From contig CDRNST010000020.1 of the NCBI GenBank assembly GCA_977016875.1, positions 3,224,001-3,288,000 on the forward strand: a stretch of DNA of 64,000 nucleotides. The letters are read 5' to 3'. Source of the stretch: Pavona decussata. Taxonomy: Eukaryota. The notes under the pieces were generated by a model. The model worked only from the letters and a program-made list of their open reading frames with translations, had not been told where the DNA came from and did not search any database. Within the stretch, counting starts at the first letter, position 1, and each line of letters starts with the position of its first letter. Made by a program: the position numbers and the translations under genes. Shown here piece by piece: positions 3,593-63,501 of the stretch.

Positions 3593-4759
3593 ATGATCTT
3601 TACAGCACAAGTGAGTACTGGTTCTTTCCTGTTTTGACTTAAGTTAGTTTGTTTTAGCAGCGAATTTAATGCTAGCAAATTTAACTTCTTTACTAATTTC
3701 CCCAGTGATGTTTATGATACGCCCGCCAGCACTACACTTAGTTAACAGCAATAAAAAAAACTTATATCGCTATTAAGGAACTAGTAAACAATGATCAGAA
3801 CTAGACTTAATGAAATGTTTTGTGGTTATATCTCTGCTTGGTTCTGGAGTATTTCGATATCATAAAATTTCGAAAAGTCACCTCTCAGATGAGTAGTTTA
3901 AAAAAAAAAAACCTTTTGGCGATAGAAGGATTAATTAATCATGCAGGTGGACTGATAGTTAAGAAGCTGAGAAACTTAAAAATGAACATTTGGGATCCTT
4001 TATTCCTGAATCTTTACTAGTCTAACCTCTAACAATTTCTTCCAATTTACGTACTTACGCTATTGTAAAATAAAGTAATAATTTATTGGGAATTAATAAA
4101 ACAAGGCCTTTTCATTCGAGCTGGTGGGACCTCGTCACCACAAATAGTGCTACCAGTTTAGTCAGTCTCAGTTTGGCAATATTACAATCTCTACTTTTAA
4201 ACTACCTGATAAATTCATTTACACGGCATTGCATCTGTGACAATATTGACAATATACTTTCATAGCTCTCTCGGTGGTAAATAAAAACAAAACACTAAAA
4301 TAAAAAACTGAGCACTTTTGTTTCTTGCAGACAATTTTGTACATAGCTCTCATCTTTACCTGTTCAAGCCCAAGCTGTACCAATTCTCTTCCCCTGGAGA
4401 AAAAGGACGCCAATCAGCAGTCACGTGACCAACAGACCCACCTTCAAGACGATGCCTTCCAACCAGAGAACATAAAACAAGAGAATGAAGTCACAAGTAG
4501 TGTGAAAGGATTTCTCGACGCACCATCTGCGCATAATCGCACTACCAGAGATGTGAATCCCCACTGTGTTGAAAAAATTGTTAGAGAATGGGATTCTTGT
4601 AGAAAGCGTTACGTTGACAAGTTCTTTTGTTTTCCTTCACACAAGTCCTGTAGTCTAGTGATAGCTCCACCCAAATGTAGACCAAAGTATGGCTTTCCTC
4701 ACGCAGATTCCGACAAAACATGTCCAATGCTTCCTATAAACTGTGAGTGTGCTTTGTGA
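3593..4759 (+). CDS. Secreted 8-Cys prepropeptide, paralog A1 (148 aa; join 3593..3610,4331..4759)
   Basis: Exon 1 ATG ATC TTT ACA GCA CAA|GTGAGT; acceptor tttcttgcag|ACA in frame with ORF 4325..4759. Hydrophobic signal, acidic propeptide, SAHNRTTR furin site, 69-aa mature domain ending CECAL. AATAAA at 4921. Confidence 0.9.
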
Positions 4760-7487
4760 GTCTGTTTTTTTTTTTTTTCTAAACTCAAACAGATGAATAC
4801 TGGGACCAGTCATTGTAATTCAATCAAGTGCTAACGGAGAGAAGTTAACCTCGCTCCATATGAGTGTTTTTCCAAGAATAATACTTTGTTAAAGATTATA
4901 GCCGGCAGCTTAAAGAGAAAAATAAAGTGTTTTGAATTGAGTACTTGTGATGCGATGTATTCATTATGCATTTTAACTTGTTTTGGCTTTTTTCTAACGT
5001 TTTGAGCTTTCTTTCCCACTGTTATTTAAATCAATGCCGTGCTTACCCTCCTTCCCAATCCTCCTTGAATCTCGGCCGAACGTAACGTCACCCGTTGAAA
5101 TGATCGGAAAGATGCGCCCAAGGACGAAGCGTGTCGCGCTTACAATCAAAGGTCACGTTCCGACCTGATAATTCAGTACTGATTATTTCCCGTTCTATCG
5201 TAACTTGGCTTGGACTGTCCGTGTGATTTTGCTTTCGTTTCCAGTACTTTTATTTCATTCCCGGCTACCCTTTGGGTTCACTGTCTTTAGGGGGTGACAA
5301 AGGAAACCCTTGCAGATGGAGCCTCCCCGCATAGGAACTCAAAGTAGTACCCCAGAGACCATTACAGGACAGTTTCTCCACCCATATTAAATTTATCAAA
5401 TAGGCGCTGCATCAACATGCATATATTTAATAATTATCAATTTATATACATGAAATCGCCAGAAGTCAGAACGTTATTTCTGTTGAGTACTGTGTTGTGT
5501 GTANNNNNNNNNNNNNNNNNNNNNNNNNNNNNNNNNNNNNNNNNNNNNNNNNNNNNNNNNNNNNNNNNNNNNNNNNNNNNNNNNNNNNNNNNNNNNNNNN
5601 NNNNNNNNNNNNNNNNNNNNNNNNNNNNNNNNNNNNNNNNNNNNNNNNNNNNNNNNNNNNNNNNNNNNNNNNNNNNNNNNNNNNNNNNNNNNNNTATATG
5701 TTCGCAAAATTTTGTTATCCGTTTTGTTACTGTCTAGTTACATTTATTATTTTGCGATATCGAGCAACAGTTACGAATCTCTTTATATTTAAACCGAGTA
5801 TCCGTCTTTCCTTATTTCCTTTCAGGTCTGCAGTCCGGCAGCTGTACGTCAAAATAGATCTAAATGGATGATGCTTTTATTTTAATCAAACAGGACACCC
5901 AAAGTAAAACTGGTTTTAGACCAAATGATCAGTACACTTTCTACGAGGCTCAATCAGAAACTATAAGCTACATTTATCATCAGTTTTCTCATTCCAGGCA
6001 GTTCCTGGACTGCCTTTAAGTCTTACTGGTATTTTTTATCGAATTAATGGGTATACCTTTTGCTGGAAAATGTTTTATACGGAACAATGCCCTTTACTTA
6101 ACTTACTTAATCTAATGTTGTCGGAAAACTGTTTTTGTGGGACTGCAAGAAGAAGCCAAATTATTCCGACAATTGCAAGGCTTTAAGAGCCAAATTGTTC
6201 TTTACTACGGAACAGAAAGGAAAATTAACACGAAAGACTATTATCCAAAGAAATGATTCGGTTTGTTGTTCATTTTTATTTATTTATCTATTTATTCTCT
6301 TCTTGTTTATCACAATATTTTGAAAGCGGAAACTGTTCATTGTTCACAACGTAAACCTTCTTATCCTTAACTTAAAAGTATATCTACAATTTATCATTGC
6401 ACTTTAATTTATAATTGCACTCAATAAAGTTGATGATCCTAAAAAAATCTTTATTCAGCATTGTTAACGCTGTTTGTCGCCACAGTTTCGAAAGCAATCA
6501 ACCTAACCATTACGATTTCGTCTGGTCAGTTGATTTTTTACTCGCTCAAGACCGGCGGAGATTATTAAGCAGTGCACGTGCCGCCAATTCAAGATCAACT
6601 TAGCAACCTGGTCCACAGATAGGGATGTACGGATTACATACACAGGACGGAAGAATTTTTCAGGTATCACTCGTACATAAATTCAAGCGTTCTTCAAAGG
6701 ACCTATGGAAAATGTTATGAATTAATTAATTGAGGCCAAGCACTATAATCGATTAACCGATATTACTGTTTACTTTTCCCAAAGTATAGGACATTGTTTT
6801 ACTGAATTTTGAAAAGGTTAGGTAGGCTCTATTTCACTGAGATGCAAGTGAAAAGGCTTGGGCAAACATTTAAATCGTTGTAGGCTAGCTTCTGTGTTGT
6901 ACATGTACAATGTGATCAATAATTGTTTGATTTTTTGAGAGGCCGATAAAAATCTGAAGAAATACTGTATATCCTTATTGAGTTACCCAGGGGGAAGCCC
7001 CAGCAACACTGTATGCTTGAGTGCTTTTGGGATACATAACATAGACAATATGTAAAGTTAATATTTCTTTTCACTCCCACGGACATGCATGAAAACTTGT
7101 CGTTTGTATGCTAGTTTTGTTTCACCTCTTCAGCTTTTAAGTTCTGAAGCATTTTGCGAATTATTATAAATATTACGCTTATTCAGGAGCCATAAACAGG
7201 GATGGAGATCGTCATCACTTCCGTCCGCCCGACCGTCCGTACACAATCCCACAATGTTAATGCGCCTGTGTCCTAGTGTTCGGCGGGACACTCAAAGAAT
7301 CTTAACTGAAATCATTTTTCTTTGACCCGGAGCGACAAAACGTTGGATTTTTCCTCTTAAAGTGAAACGTTTCCCTCACTTAACATTGTAAAACGAACGA
7401 AAAAATCAGCAATGGAATAAAAGGACTGGTTATCCTCCAAAGAAGCGAGTATTTTCATATGACTTTGTTGACAAAACCTTGCTGTTT

Positions 7488-7511
7488 GTATAGGTAATCA
7501 CATGATTCCGA

Positions 7512-7542
<31 letters not shown>

Positions 7543-61598: not shown

Positions 61599-62439
61599 TC
61601 AAACAGCACACTGGCAACCGACGGTTAATGGAGCACATTTTTCCATAAACTTGGCCTGTCGGAAGCCGATCACTGTTTTACACTTAGGATAATGATATCT
61701 ATTAATGGCTTCATAACACGCAACGTGTCTATTTAAACATTGTACTTGATTGACGAATTTTTTTCTACACCTATCGAACTTTCTCACAATATTTGAAATG
61801 CACGGATTACGGACATTTCTGACAGTGCGATTGTGCGCAGATGGCTTGTCAAGCGATGTGTCGGTACGACTTGCGACATCATTCCCTTGGTTAATGCTCT
61901 CCTCTGATTGAAAGGCATTGCCTTGTGACTGGTTCTCATGGTCCATATCGCTTGTCACGTTGTTCTCCTGTTTGTTGCTCTCTTCTGATTGGAAGGCATT
62001 GCCTTTTGGCTGGCTCTCATTGTCCATCTCACTTGTGACGTCAACCCATTGGTTGATGTTCTTCTCTGATTGGAAAGCATTGCCTTGTGGATGGGTCTCT
62101 TGGTCCATACCACTTGTGACATCATTCTCTTGGTTGATGCCCTCCTCTGGTTGAAAAGCATCGTCTTCAAGCTGGATCTCTAGGTTCATGCCACTTGTGA
62201 CGTCATCCCATTGGTGGATGCTTTCCTCTGATTGGAGGCCATTGTCTTGTGGCTGGGTCTCTTGTCCAGGTGTCTGTTGATTGAAGATCTGATCCAGGGG
62301 TAATGACATATCCAGGAAAAGAGGTTTTGTAAAACTTAGGCTGGAGCAGCTCAAAATGACAATTGTTGATAACATTATCTGTTTGAAACAAAATGAAGAA
62401 ATTAGTTGGAAACAATGCAAGGAATCCATCTCTCTCTCC

Positions 62440-62501
<62 letters not shown>

Positions 62502-63501
62502 CACTTACAATATCTTTTAACGAAGAAACGTTGCAACGCTTAAAGCACTATACAAAAAGCTACAAGCTGCAGCACTTTACAATAATTTACAATGTTGGAA
62601 AACGATTATTGAACTGCCAAGTATTGCCATCAAAATAACAATTTTCAAATTGTATTTTATTTCGTGTTGCTTCTGGAACGGTTTTACGATTCTTTGAAAG
62701 CATCTTGTATAATCATATATAAGTGCTGCTGAGATTCGTATGGAAACAAAAAACAAGCTTGTTCACTCAGGAAGGATTCACACTTGATGCACTGAAGTTT
62801 CGCATCGTACTCTAAAAAGGGAGAATCTAATTGTCGCGGGTCGAGGATTAGGGTTAGGGTTAGGGTAAGCGACAATTTACCCGCGACCAGCGACAATTAG
62901 CTACTACCTCGAAAAAGAAGAAGATCTCCAGGTGTAGAATACGAGCAGAAGAAAATATGGGGATGAACAAAGTTTCTCCGCAGTCAGTTCTACATTCAGT
63001 GATTGTCTACCAATCCTCGCATTTTGACATGTGATTAGGCAGGTTATGTGTGCTTCTTATTTGTTGACATGTTAAATTCCATTTCATTTCTAGTAGCTGT
63101 GCGGGTGACTTTTACTTCACGTTTCAGTCATTTCATGATGAGATGAATCTCAAAACCTTTTTCAAAACTTGGCTCTTTTAAAGGCTGTGTGTAGTCAGTT
63201 TGGACAAACAAACGCGCTGCTAAACTGTACGTGCAGTGGGATCAAGGTAAGTTAAAATGAGGTGAGGTGACTTAGAAATAGAAAGCAAAGTTCGACAAAG
63301 GACTTGTACTTTTACACAATCCAGGAAATAGTTTTCTATCATATTAACATCAGCAATGCTGTTACTTGATTAAGGGCAACTACATTGGTACTGCTCGCAC
63401 GGACTACATTCTGCATATCAAAGTTACAAATTTTCACGAAGCAATAGTAATTCTTGACATATACTTTGGTGGATCGTACTTACTTTCGCTGTAGTATTCA
63501 T
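61599..63501 (-). CDS. Secreted 8-Cys prepropeptide with repeat propeptide, paralog D3 (265 aa; join complement 63484..63501,61599..62378)
   Basis: Exon 1 MNTTAK|GTAAGT; acceptor aaacag|ATA; 5 x 27-aa repeats (61860-62264); SAHNRTVR; ends CQCAV. Confidence 0.88.
62428..62496. repeat. (TC)n microsatellite in the D3 intron
   Basis: Directly visible; it explains the false poly-RE N-terminus of ORF 61599..62504. Confidence 0.95.

Follow-up and report, generated by a model that had tools for sequence, protein, structure and literature searches.

The 64,000-nucleotide (nt) stretch of the Pavona decussata genome analyzed here (contig CDRNST010000020.1, positions 3,224,001 to 3,288,000 of the forward strand; hereafter, the window) contains a cluster of twelve loci that, as judged from structure models, very probably represent a new family of pre-pro-proteins with a cystine-knot fold. 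An original prediction, made from the sequence alone, had described twelve loci in six groups (three A, two B, two C pseudogenes, three D, one E and one F), and this inventory was recovered in full. A six-frame scan of the window yielded ten stop-free frames in which an AHNR-x-x-R motif is followed by an eight-cysteine domain, and tblastn added two further, truncated E-like copies, C1 and C2. Beyond these two pseudogenes, intactness held for eight of the twelve loci, which are free of any defect, and failed for two: the first cysteine of the domain is replaced by phenylalanine in B2, and a stop codon takes the place of Cys7 in F.

At the intact loci, the encoded precursor comprises, in this order, a signal peptide, an acidic propeptide, the AHNR-x-x-R motif and a basic domain of 69–73 residues with the cysteine spacing C-x10/11-C-x9-C-x6-C-x8/11-C-x14-C-x6-C-x-C. 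Alignments and computed isoelectric points (8.5–9.7 for the mature domains, 4.1–5.7 for the propeptides) bear out the originally described (S/T)AHNRxxR motif, cysteine spacing, length and basicity of the domain and acidity of the propeptide. The mature part measures 69 residues in type A, 72 in types B and D and 73 in type E, and all eight cysteines are retained in 136 of 154 domain instances. The segment P-S/T-A-H-N-R-T-x-R is nearly invariant before the domain, AHNRTxR is nearly invariant across genera, and R-x-x-R directly before the mature domain is invariant in a 30-sequence alignment, with the rest of AHNR-x-x-R nearly so. That the residues His-Asn-Arg-Thr, with an N-x-T sequon among them, are so strictly kept around a minimal RxxR site suggests that processing may be regulated.

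The loci also share a characteristic gene structure. Exon 1 consists everywhere of ATG and five further codons followed by GTRAGT, a pattern with seven matches in the window as opposed to zero expected by chance; its length is invariant while its sequence varies (MNFTAQ/MIFTAQ, MNFKAQ, MNLNAQ, MNTTEK, MSTTEK, MNTTAK and, tentatively, MSRMVK in F). The introns, of 454–1464 nt, are inserted in phase 0 after codon 6 and close with a polypyrimidine tract and CAG; exon 2 opens with the codons for the hydrophobic signal-peptide core. Most loci have a TATA-like box about 100–145 nt upstream; poly(A) signals are found downstream of the stops. Donors, acceptors, TATA-like boxes and poly(A) signals all lend the gene models support at the level of sequence signals; secretion, furin cleavage, splicing and expression of the family are inferences. 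The six-codon first exon recurs in five NCBI gene models with complete N-termini, from Acropora palmata, Oculina patagonica and Desmophyllum pertusum.

The fold assignment comes from AlphaFold models calculated with the family alignment. The model of the B type (target B1) reached a predicted local distance difference test score (pLDDT) of 86.3, with values above 90 over most of the domain, and the model of the A type reached 77.9. Both models contain four long strands arranged as two hairpins, with β1-β2 forming finger 1, a linker or helix following, and β3-β4 forming finger 2. In an exhaustive structural comparison against 48,161 PDB representatives, in which Z scores of 2 or more were counted, cystine-knot growth factors and cytokines accounted for all 26 chains matched by the B model and for 29 of the 30 matched by the A model. 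The top matches were NGF (1sg1; Z 3.9 and 4.4 with the two models), Spätzle (3e07; Z 3.9 and 4.3, root-mean-square deviation [rmsd] 3.0 Å over 64 residues, 17% identity), IL-17A (Z 4.1, rmsd 3.2 Å over 65 residues), IL-25 and pro-NGF, then PTTH; GDNF/artemin, gremlin, SOST, coagulogen, noggin, norrin and TGF-β ranked lower. Low Z scores are usual for small elongated β proteins. As the absolute values are nevertheless low (3.9–4.4), we take the fold class, rather than the nearest subfamily, to be well supported. Foldseek retrieved no PDB entry at an E value of 0.001 or better; its weak top rows were IL-17A, Spätzle and NT-3. Feature and shape searches of the ESM Atlas also list IL17, NGF and Spätzle clusters; the shape search used the same AlphaFold model and is thus not independent, and the feature search provides leads only. 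The nearest unnamed cluster in the Atlas (features 0.94, shape template modeling score 0.55) consists of hypothetical proteins from tardigrades, about 180 residues long, and may be another orphan cystine-knot family.

The positions of the cysteines relative to the modeled strands are in keeping with this fold. Cys1 lies before finger 1, the Cys3-x6-Cys4 segment after it, Cys5 before finger 2 and Cys7-x-Cys8 at the end of finger 2, positions that together fit a canonical knot in the models; Cys2 and Cys6 are located in the finger loops. We suggest that the knot would be formed by Cys1-Cys5, Cys3-Cys7 and Cys4-Cys8, with Cys2-Cys6 as an extra bridge. In a lone divergent relative elsewhere in the genome (contig C148, 3071715-3072071), whose short propeptide terminates in KR, precisely Cys2 and Cys6 are missing from an otherwise complete set of eight cysteines. 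Such joint loss, in a single example, would fit an accessory Cys2-Cys6 bridge. This relative had no matches in protein databases; it could be a copy in decay or else represent a minimal or ancestral state.

All searches for relatives were conducted with exon 2 or domain sequences. No Pfam match was obtained at E values up to 10 with five precursors or 30 domains, and PDB searches by sequence and by profile gave only chance-level rows, with no neurotrophin among them. A word-indexed search of 5.8 billion proteins returned 46 matches, and a family profile compared exhaustively with 1.84 billion cluster representatives found only 46 clusters. Of these members, only those from Acropora palmata, Porites lobata, Oculina patagonica and Desmophyllum pertusum carry a name, which reads "uncharacterized" or "hypothetical" protein; the four species represent both major clades of Scleractinia. 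Among the matches of the protein and profile searches there was none from a sea anemone, a hydrozoan or a bilaterian, a taxonomic range that depends on which database entries bear names. Most other members are bare open reading frame calls on raw assemblies, and annotation pipelines therefore usually miss genes of the family; transcriptomic studies have probably overlooked most members, which are absent from coral gene annotations. Full-text literature searches for the motif strings returned no paper, and none describing the family was found in the literature on coral Spätzle-like or neurotrophin-like factors. By these comparisons, the family is new at the sequence level, without name or description, and so far restricted to stony corals. 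Its earlier designation as an unrecognized family is thus justified in so far as Pfam, PDB and the profile search offer no named sequence family, and needs qualifying in that the predicted cystine-knot fold means that it is not a structural orphan; likewise, its novelty stands with respect to characterized families, to none of which there is a strong match, while members from Acropora, Oculina, Desmophyllum and Porites were already deposited as "uncharacterized protein". One member from another coral assembly (P0048, an ENA contig; 233 residues) carries two of the predicted cystine-knot domains one after the other within a single open frame.

Comparison with named systems delineates the family further. 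With Spätzle and NGF it shares a signal peptide, a prodomain, a predicted cleavage after arginine, a predicted C-terminal cystine-knot domain and a C-x-C near the stop, and neurotrophins likewise carry a furin RxxR site. However, the coral domain is smaller (69–73 compared to about 106–118 residues). Its cysteines number eight, two of which (Cys2 and Cys6) presumably form an extra bridge, and none is left over to link a dimer covalently; the putative knot ring is C-x6-C, as opposed to C-x9-C in NGF. The Spätzle profile (PF16077) matched nothing in precursors, domains or genome, and the NGF profile (PF00243) gave no sequence-profile match. With IL-17 the family shares the predicted cystine-knot cytokine fold and a C-terminal C-x-C; IL-17s are not known to have a furin-cleaved prodomain. 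Molluscs and echinoderms possess IL-17 genes in tandem arrays. Large tandem expansions of IL-17 genes have been described in marine invertebrates (PMC8353272), and the coral family is likewise arranged in tandem. Membership in the IL-17 family was nevertheless rejected, as there was no PF06083 match in 30 members and the CPW/SPW motif is absent from the alignment. The coral's own IL-17-like genes, arrayed in tandem on contig C334 (at 2.28-2.53 Mb and at 3.43-3.47 Mb), contain the CPW motif and score about 24 bits with PF06083, which suffices for its threshold; hhalign gave a probability of 0.9% for a relationship between them and the family studied here. In these IL-17-like genes the C-terminal strand lacks C-x-C, and they are unrelated in sequence to the family in the window.

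The twelve loci are part of a considerably larger set. The description as a twelve-locus cluster is correct for the window and falls short of the family, with at least 56 domain matches in the whole genome, roughly 15 of type A, 13 of B, 15 of D, three of E and two of F. Nearly all of them lie on two contigs, the contig of the window (C20; 2.945-3.298 Mb, window included) and C43. Within the window, two tandem units of about 20 kb (2156-22587 and 23532-42562), 91–98% identical, each comprise an A gene, a B gene, a C pseudogene and a D gene; a third, rearranged unit from about 42000 holds A3, E, F and D3. The block on C43 is inverted, colinear with C20 and about 92% identical to it. The possibility that this block is a haplotig was rejected, because an identity of about 92% corresponds to the divergence between the tandem units, and the block is hence read as paralogous. 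Two flanking members have a decayed cleavage motif without RxxR and keep all eight cysteines (C20:3297953-3298171 and C43:2558050-2558268); the former lies about 10 kb beyond the end of the window.

Within types, the ratio of nonsynonymous to synonymous differences per site (pN/pS) in the mature domain is 0.17 for A, 0.55 for B and 0.18 for D, at a pS of 4–10%. This pS matches the divergence of the surrounding units, and the copies are therefore not simply homogenized. Between types, ω ranges from 0.18 to 0.49. The three A copies in the window show no amino-acid change in the mature domain, compared to six to nine changes in the equally long part comprising signal peptide and propeptide. The mature domains are under purifying selection, the released domain being the constrained part, and the propeptide evolves almost freely save for its last nine residues. 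Tandem duplication and pseudogenes fit birth-and-death evolution under such selection, in agreement with the original prediction of this mode of expansion.

Arguing by analogy with NGF, Spätzle and IL-17, we tentatively favor an endogenous signaling ligand over a secreted effector as the product of these genes, and give it close to an even chance. The precursor would enter the secretory pathway co-translationally, and a furin-type proprotein convertase would cut after the second arginine of AHNRTxR, a step that the N-R-T sequon inside the cleavage site could modulate. The freed basic domain would fold as a compact cystine-knot module with two β-hairpin fingers and would act, like the named factors, as an extracellular ligand on a coral cell-surface receptor. 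The genome contains proprotein convertases, with 22 P-domain matches, as well as at least 67 TIR matches, including single-exon frames of the size of Toll-like receptors (TLRs), and three SEFIR matches; the expanded TLR/TIR genes and the SEFIR-domain genes would be candidates for receptors. Clusters of single-exon frames of about 970–1000 residues that end in TIR domains were seen on contigs C27 (2.44-2.62 Mb) and C46 (3.55 Mb), and probably constitute an expanded array of Toll-like receptors. To our knowledge, no Spätzle or neurotrophin homolog has been recognized in cnidarians, and we know of no ligands for the expanded Toll-like receptor repertoires of corals. An early search in Nematostella likewise found no Spätzle or neurotrophin homolog (PMC2586362). 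A more specific proposal, that the family corresponds in cnidarians to Spätzle and the neurotrophins and that its convertase-activated products are endogenous ligands of the Toll-like (or p75/IL-17R-like) receptors expanded in corals, appears rather improbable to us at present.

The main rival to an endogenous ligand is a venom or defense effector, that is, a toxin or antimicrobial released from its propeptide in gland cells or nematocytes and directed at prey, predators, competitors or microbes, with tandem amplification providing a high dosage; we consider it somewhat unlikely. A signal peptide, an acidic propeptide, a basic cleavage site and a basic cysteine-rich mature peptide are the usual layout of cnidarian toxins and antimicrobials, and the 12–15 near-identical copies per type, under purifying selection, resemble the dosage arrays of sea-anemone neurotoxin genes. 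The present family is so far confined to stony corals, and a venom or antimicrobial role suits its precursor layout and copy number about as well as a ligand role does. SCRiPs, whose precursors have been described with such a toxin-type layout, are a multigene group of secreted eight-cysteine precursors, some with convertase sites, found mainly in stony corals and also in sea anemones; their mature peptides of 40–48 residues have the framework C(6)C(6)C(7)C(5)C(6)CCC and a β-defensin-like fold (PMC10892658). Membership in this group was rejected, as the family studied here differs in cysteine framework, length (69–73 residues) and predicted fold. The unlikeness to SCRiPs in framework and size also speaks against an effector, as does the nature of the structural matches, which belong to endogenous cytokines and growth factors and not to known cnidarian toxin scaffolds. 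Furthermore, nothing in proteomics or expression was found to connect the family with venom, and the full-text search with the motif strings brought up no paper.

The lower-ranking structural matches raise another possibility, namely that the product acts outside the cell as an antagonist or modulates the matrix, in the manner of DAN, gremlin, sclerostin or noggin, or that it is a coral-specific factor involved in calcification; it would then bind other ligands or the skeletal matrix in place of a signaling receptor. Gremlin-1, SOST, NBL1 and Noggin are among the matches with Z scores of 2.3–3.0, and all members seen so far come from Scleractinia, which build skeletons. However, NGF, Spätzle and IL-17 outscore these matches, DAN-family proteins are not known to be released by furin as C-terminal domains, and there was no Pfam DAN or Noggin match. 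We regard such a function as distinctly improbable.

Several observations weigh against a cystine-knot signaling ligand. Absolute structural scores are weak, with Z no higher than 4.4 and Foldseek E values above 0.6, and the A and B models are not independent, because their alignments overlap. Pfam, PDB and profile-profile searches revealed no sequence-level link to NGF, Spätzle or IL17, and the proposed knot connectivity draws on one example of cysteine co-loss. Twelve to 15 near-identical copies per type look like dosage amplification, which would suit venom or antimicrobial products too. With respect to expression, no joint between exon 1 and exon 2 was present in RNA-library contigs from four runs compared over 45450-51350, a comparison dominated by two high-copy repeats (45647-46631 and 49587-49980). 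Only one piece, 182 nt long and 93% identical, lay over exon 2 of A3, and those Logan contigs with family members that were inspected were genomic rather than transcript. The two repeats showed very high contig depth in the four sequencing runs compared.

The lack of spliced RNA among the contigs over 45450-51350 could also be expected if the loci were decaying or silent duplicates, or an assembly artifact of a collapsed or expanded repeat, without function, and the defects in four of the twelve loci and four N gaps in the region point in the same direction. On the other hand, pN/pS in the mature domains lies well below 1 at a pS of 4–10%, and coral genera from both major clades share the family with a conserved gene structure. 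Moreover, the units differ by 2–9% and have substitutions of their own, and are therefore not assembly copies. An absence of function is accordingly very unlikely.

As a pan-scleractinian family with 50 or more copies, these proteins are a concrete candidate for coral cytokines, which would bear on immunity, symbiosis, allorecognition and disease. Should they be effectors instead, they would represent a new cnidarian toxin or antimicrobial scaffold. If they were indeed counterparts of Spätzle and neurotrophins, cytokine-type Toll activation would either predate the cnidarian-bilaterian split or have arisen independently in corals, and corals would own a large inducible cytokine array.

The individual loci are laid out as follows. 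A1 (3593-4759, plus strand) has exon 1 at 3593-3610 (MIFTAQ, donor GTGAGT), an intron of 720 nt and exon 2 at 4331-4759, including the TGA stop; AHNRTTR is encoded from 4529, the mature 69-residue domain at 4550-4756, and the ATG is preceded, at a distance of about 111 nt, by a TATA-like box. A2 (24912-26081, plus strand; exon 1 24912-24929, MNFTAQ; exon 2 25653-26081) and A3 (45524-47434, plus strand; exon 1 45524-45541; exon 2 47006-47434) encode mature domains identical in protein sequence to that of A1. The A3 intron, with 1464 nt, is about twice as long as those of A1 and A2, because the high-copy repeat at about 45647-46631 lies inside it. B1 (11352-12279, plus strand) comprises exon 1 at 11352-11369 (MNFKAQ) and exon 2 at 11824-12279, with the mature 72-residue domain at 12061-12276. 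B2 (31299-32226, plus strand; exon 1 31299-31316; exon 2 31771-32226) is left with seven cysteines, and this copy may be impaired by the loss of Cys1.

The D genes lie on the minus strand. D1 (16796-18638) has exon 1 at 18638-18621 (MNTTEK), exon 2 at 17494-16796 and the mature 72-residue domain at 17014-16799; D2 (36846-38603) has exon 1 at 38603-38586 (MSTTEK) and exon 2 at 37544-36846; and D3 (61599-63501) has exon 1 at 63501-63484 (MNTTAK) and exon 2 at 62378-61599. Their propeptides are built of four to five copies of an 81-nt (27-residue) repeat, with 4.1 copies in D1 (17057-17384, minus strand) and 5.0 in D3 (61865-62268, minus strand). The D3 intron contains a (TC)n microsatellite of 34.5 units at 62429-62497, about 50–120 nt upstream of the exon 2 acceptor, which translates as an Arg-Glu run in the raw open reading frame.

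E and F are also encoded on the minus strand. Gene E (50199-51204; exon 1 51204-51187, MNFKAQ; exon 2 50645-50199) has a mature domain of 73 residues with x11 between Cys1 and Cys2; its cleavage site reads AHNRAIR, and the N-glycosylation sequon is therefore lost. Locus F (54937-55895) has a tentative exon 1 at 55895-55878 (MSRMVK) and exon 2 at 55362-54937, in which an in-frame TGA at 54954-54952 replaces the Cys7 codon; its paralog on C43 is intact. The window contains essentially no other coding sequence.

The two E-like pseudogenes lie on the plus strand. In C1 (14791-15591; exon 1 14791-14808; exon 2 remnant 15400-15591), exon 2 is broken off within the propeptide by unrelated sequence, and no cysteine domain was found. 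In C2 (34554-35503; exon 1 34554-34571, MNLNAQ; exon 2 remnant 35140-35503), a frameshift is located near the cleavage site (about 35367), and the cysteine domain ends after Cys4 at a junction identical to that of C1. Because the same foreign junction cuts both copies and C2 is also frameshifted, both are pseudogenes irrespective of the content of nearby assembly gaps.

None of the four N gaps in the window falls within an exon or intron of any gene model. The gap at 15865-16013 begins 274 nt past the point of disruption of C1 and at least 640 nt beyond the poly(A) signal of D1, and that at 35720-35883 lies about 220 nt past the point of disruption of C2 and at least 640 nt beyond the poly(A) signal of D2. 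The gap at 57110-57248 is intergenic, between F and D3. The remaining gap, at 5504-5694, lies 745 nt beyond the A1 stop, and its flanks are, by coordinates alone, colinear with the paralogous unit.

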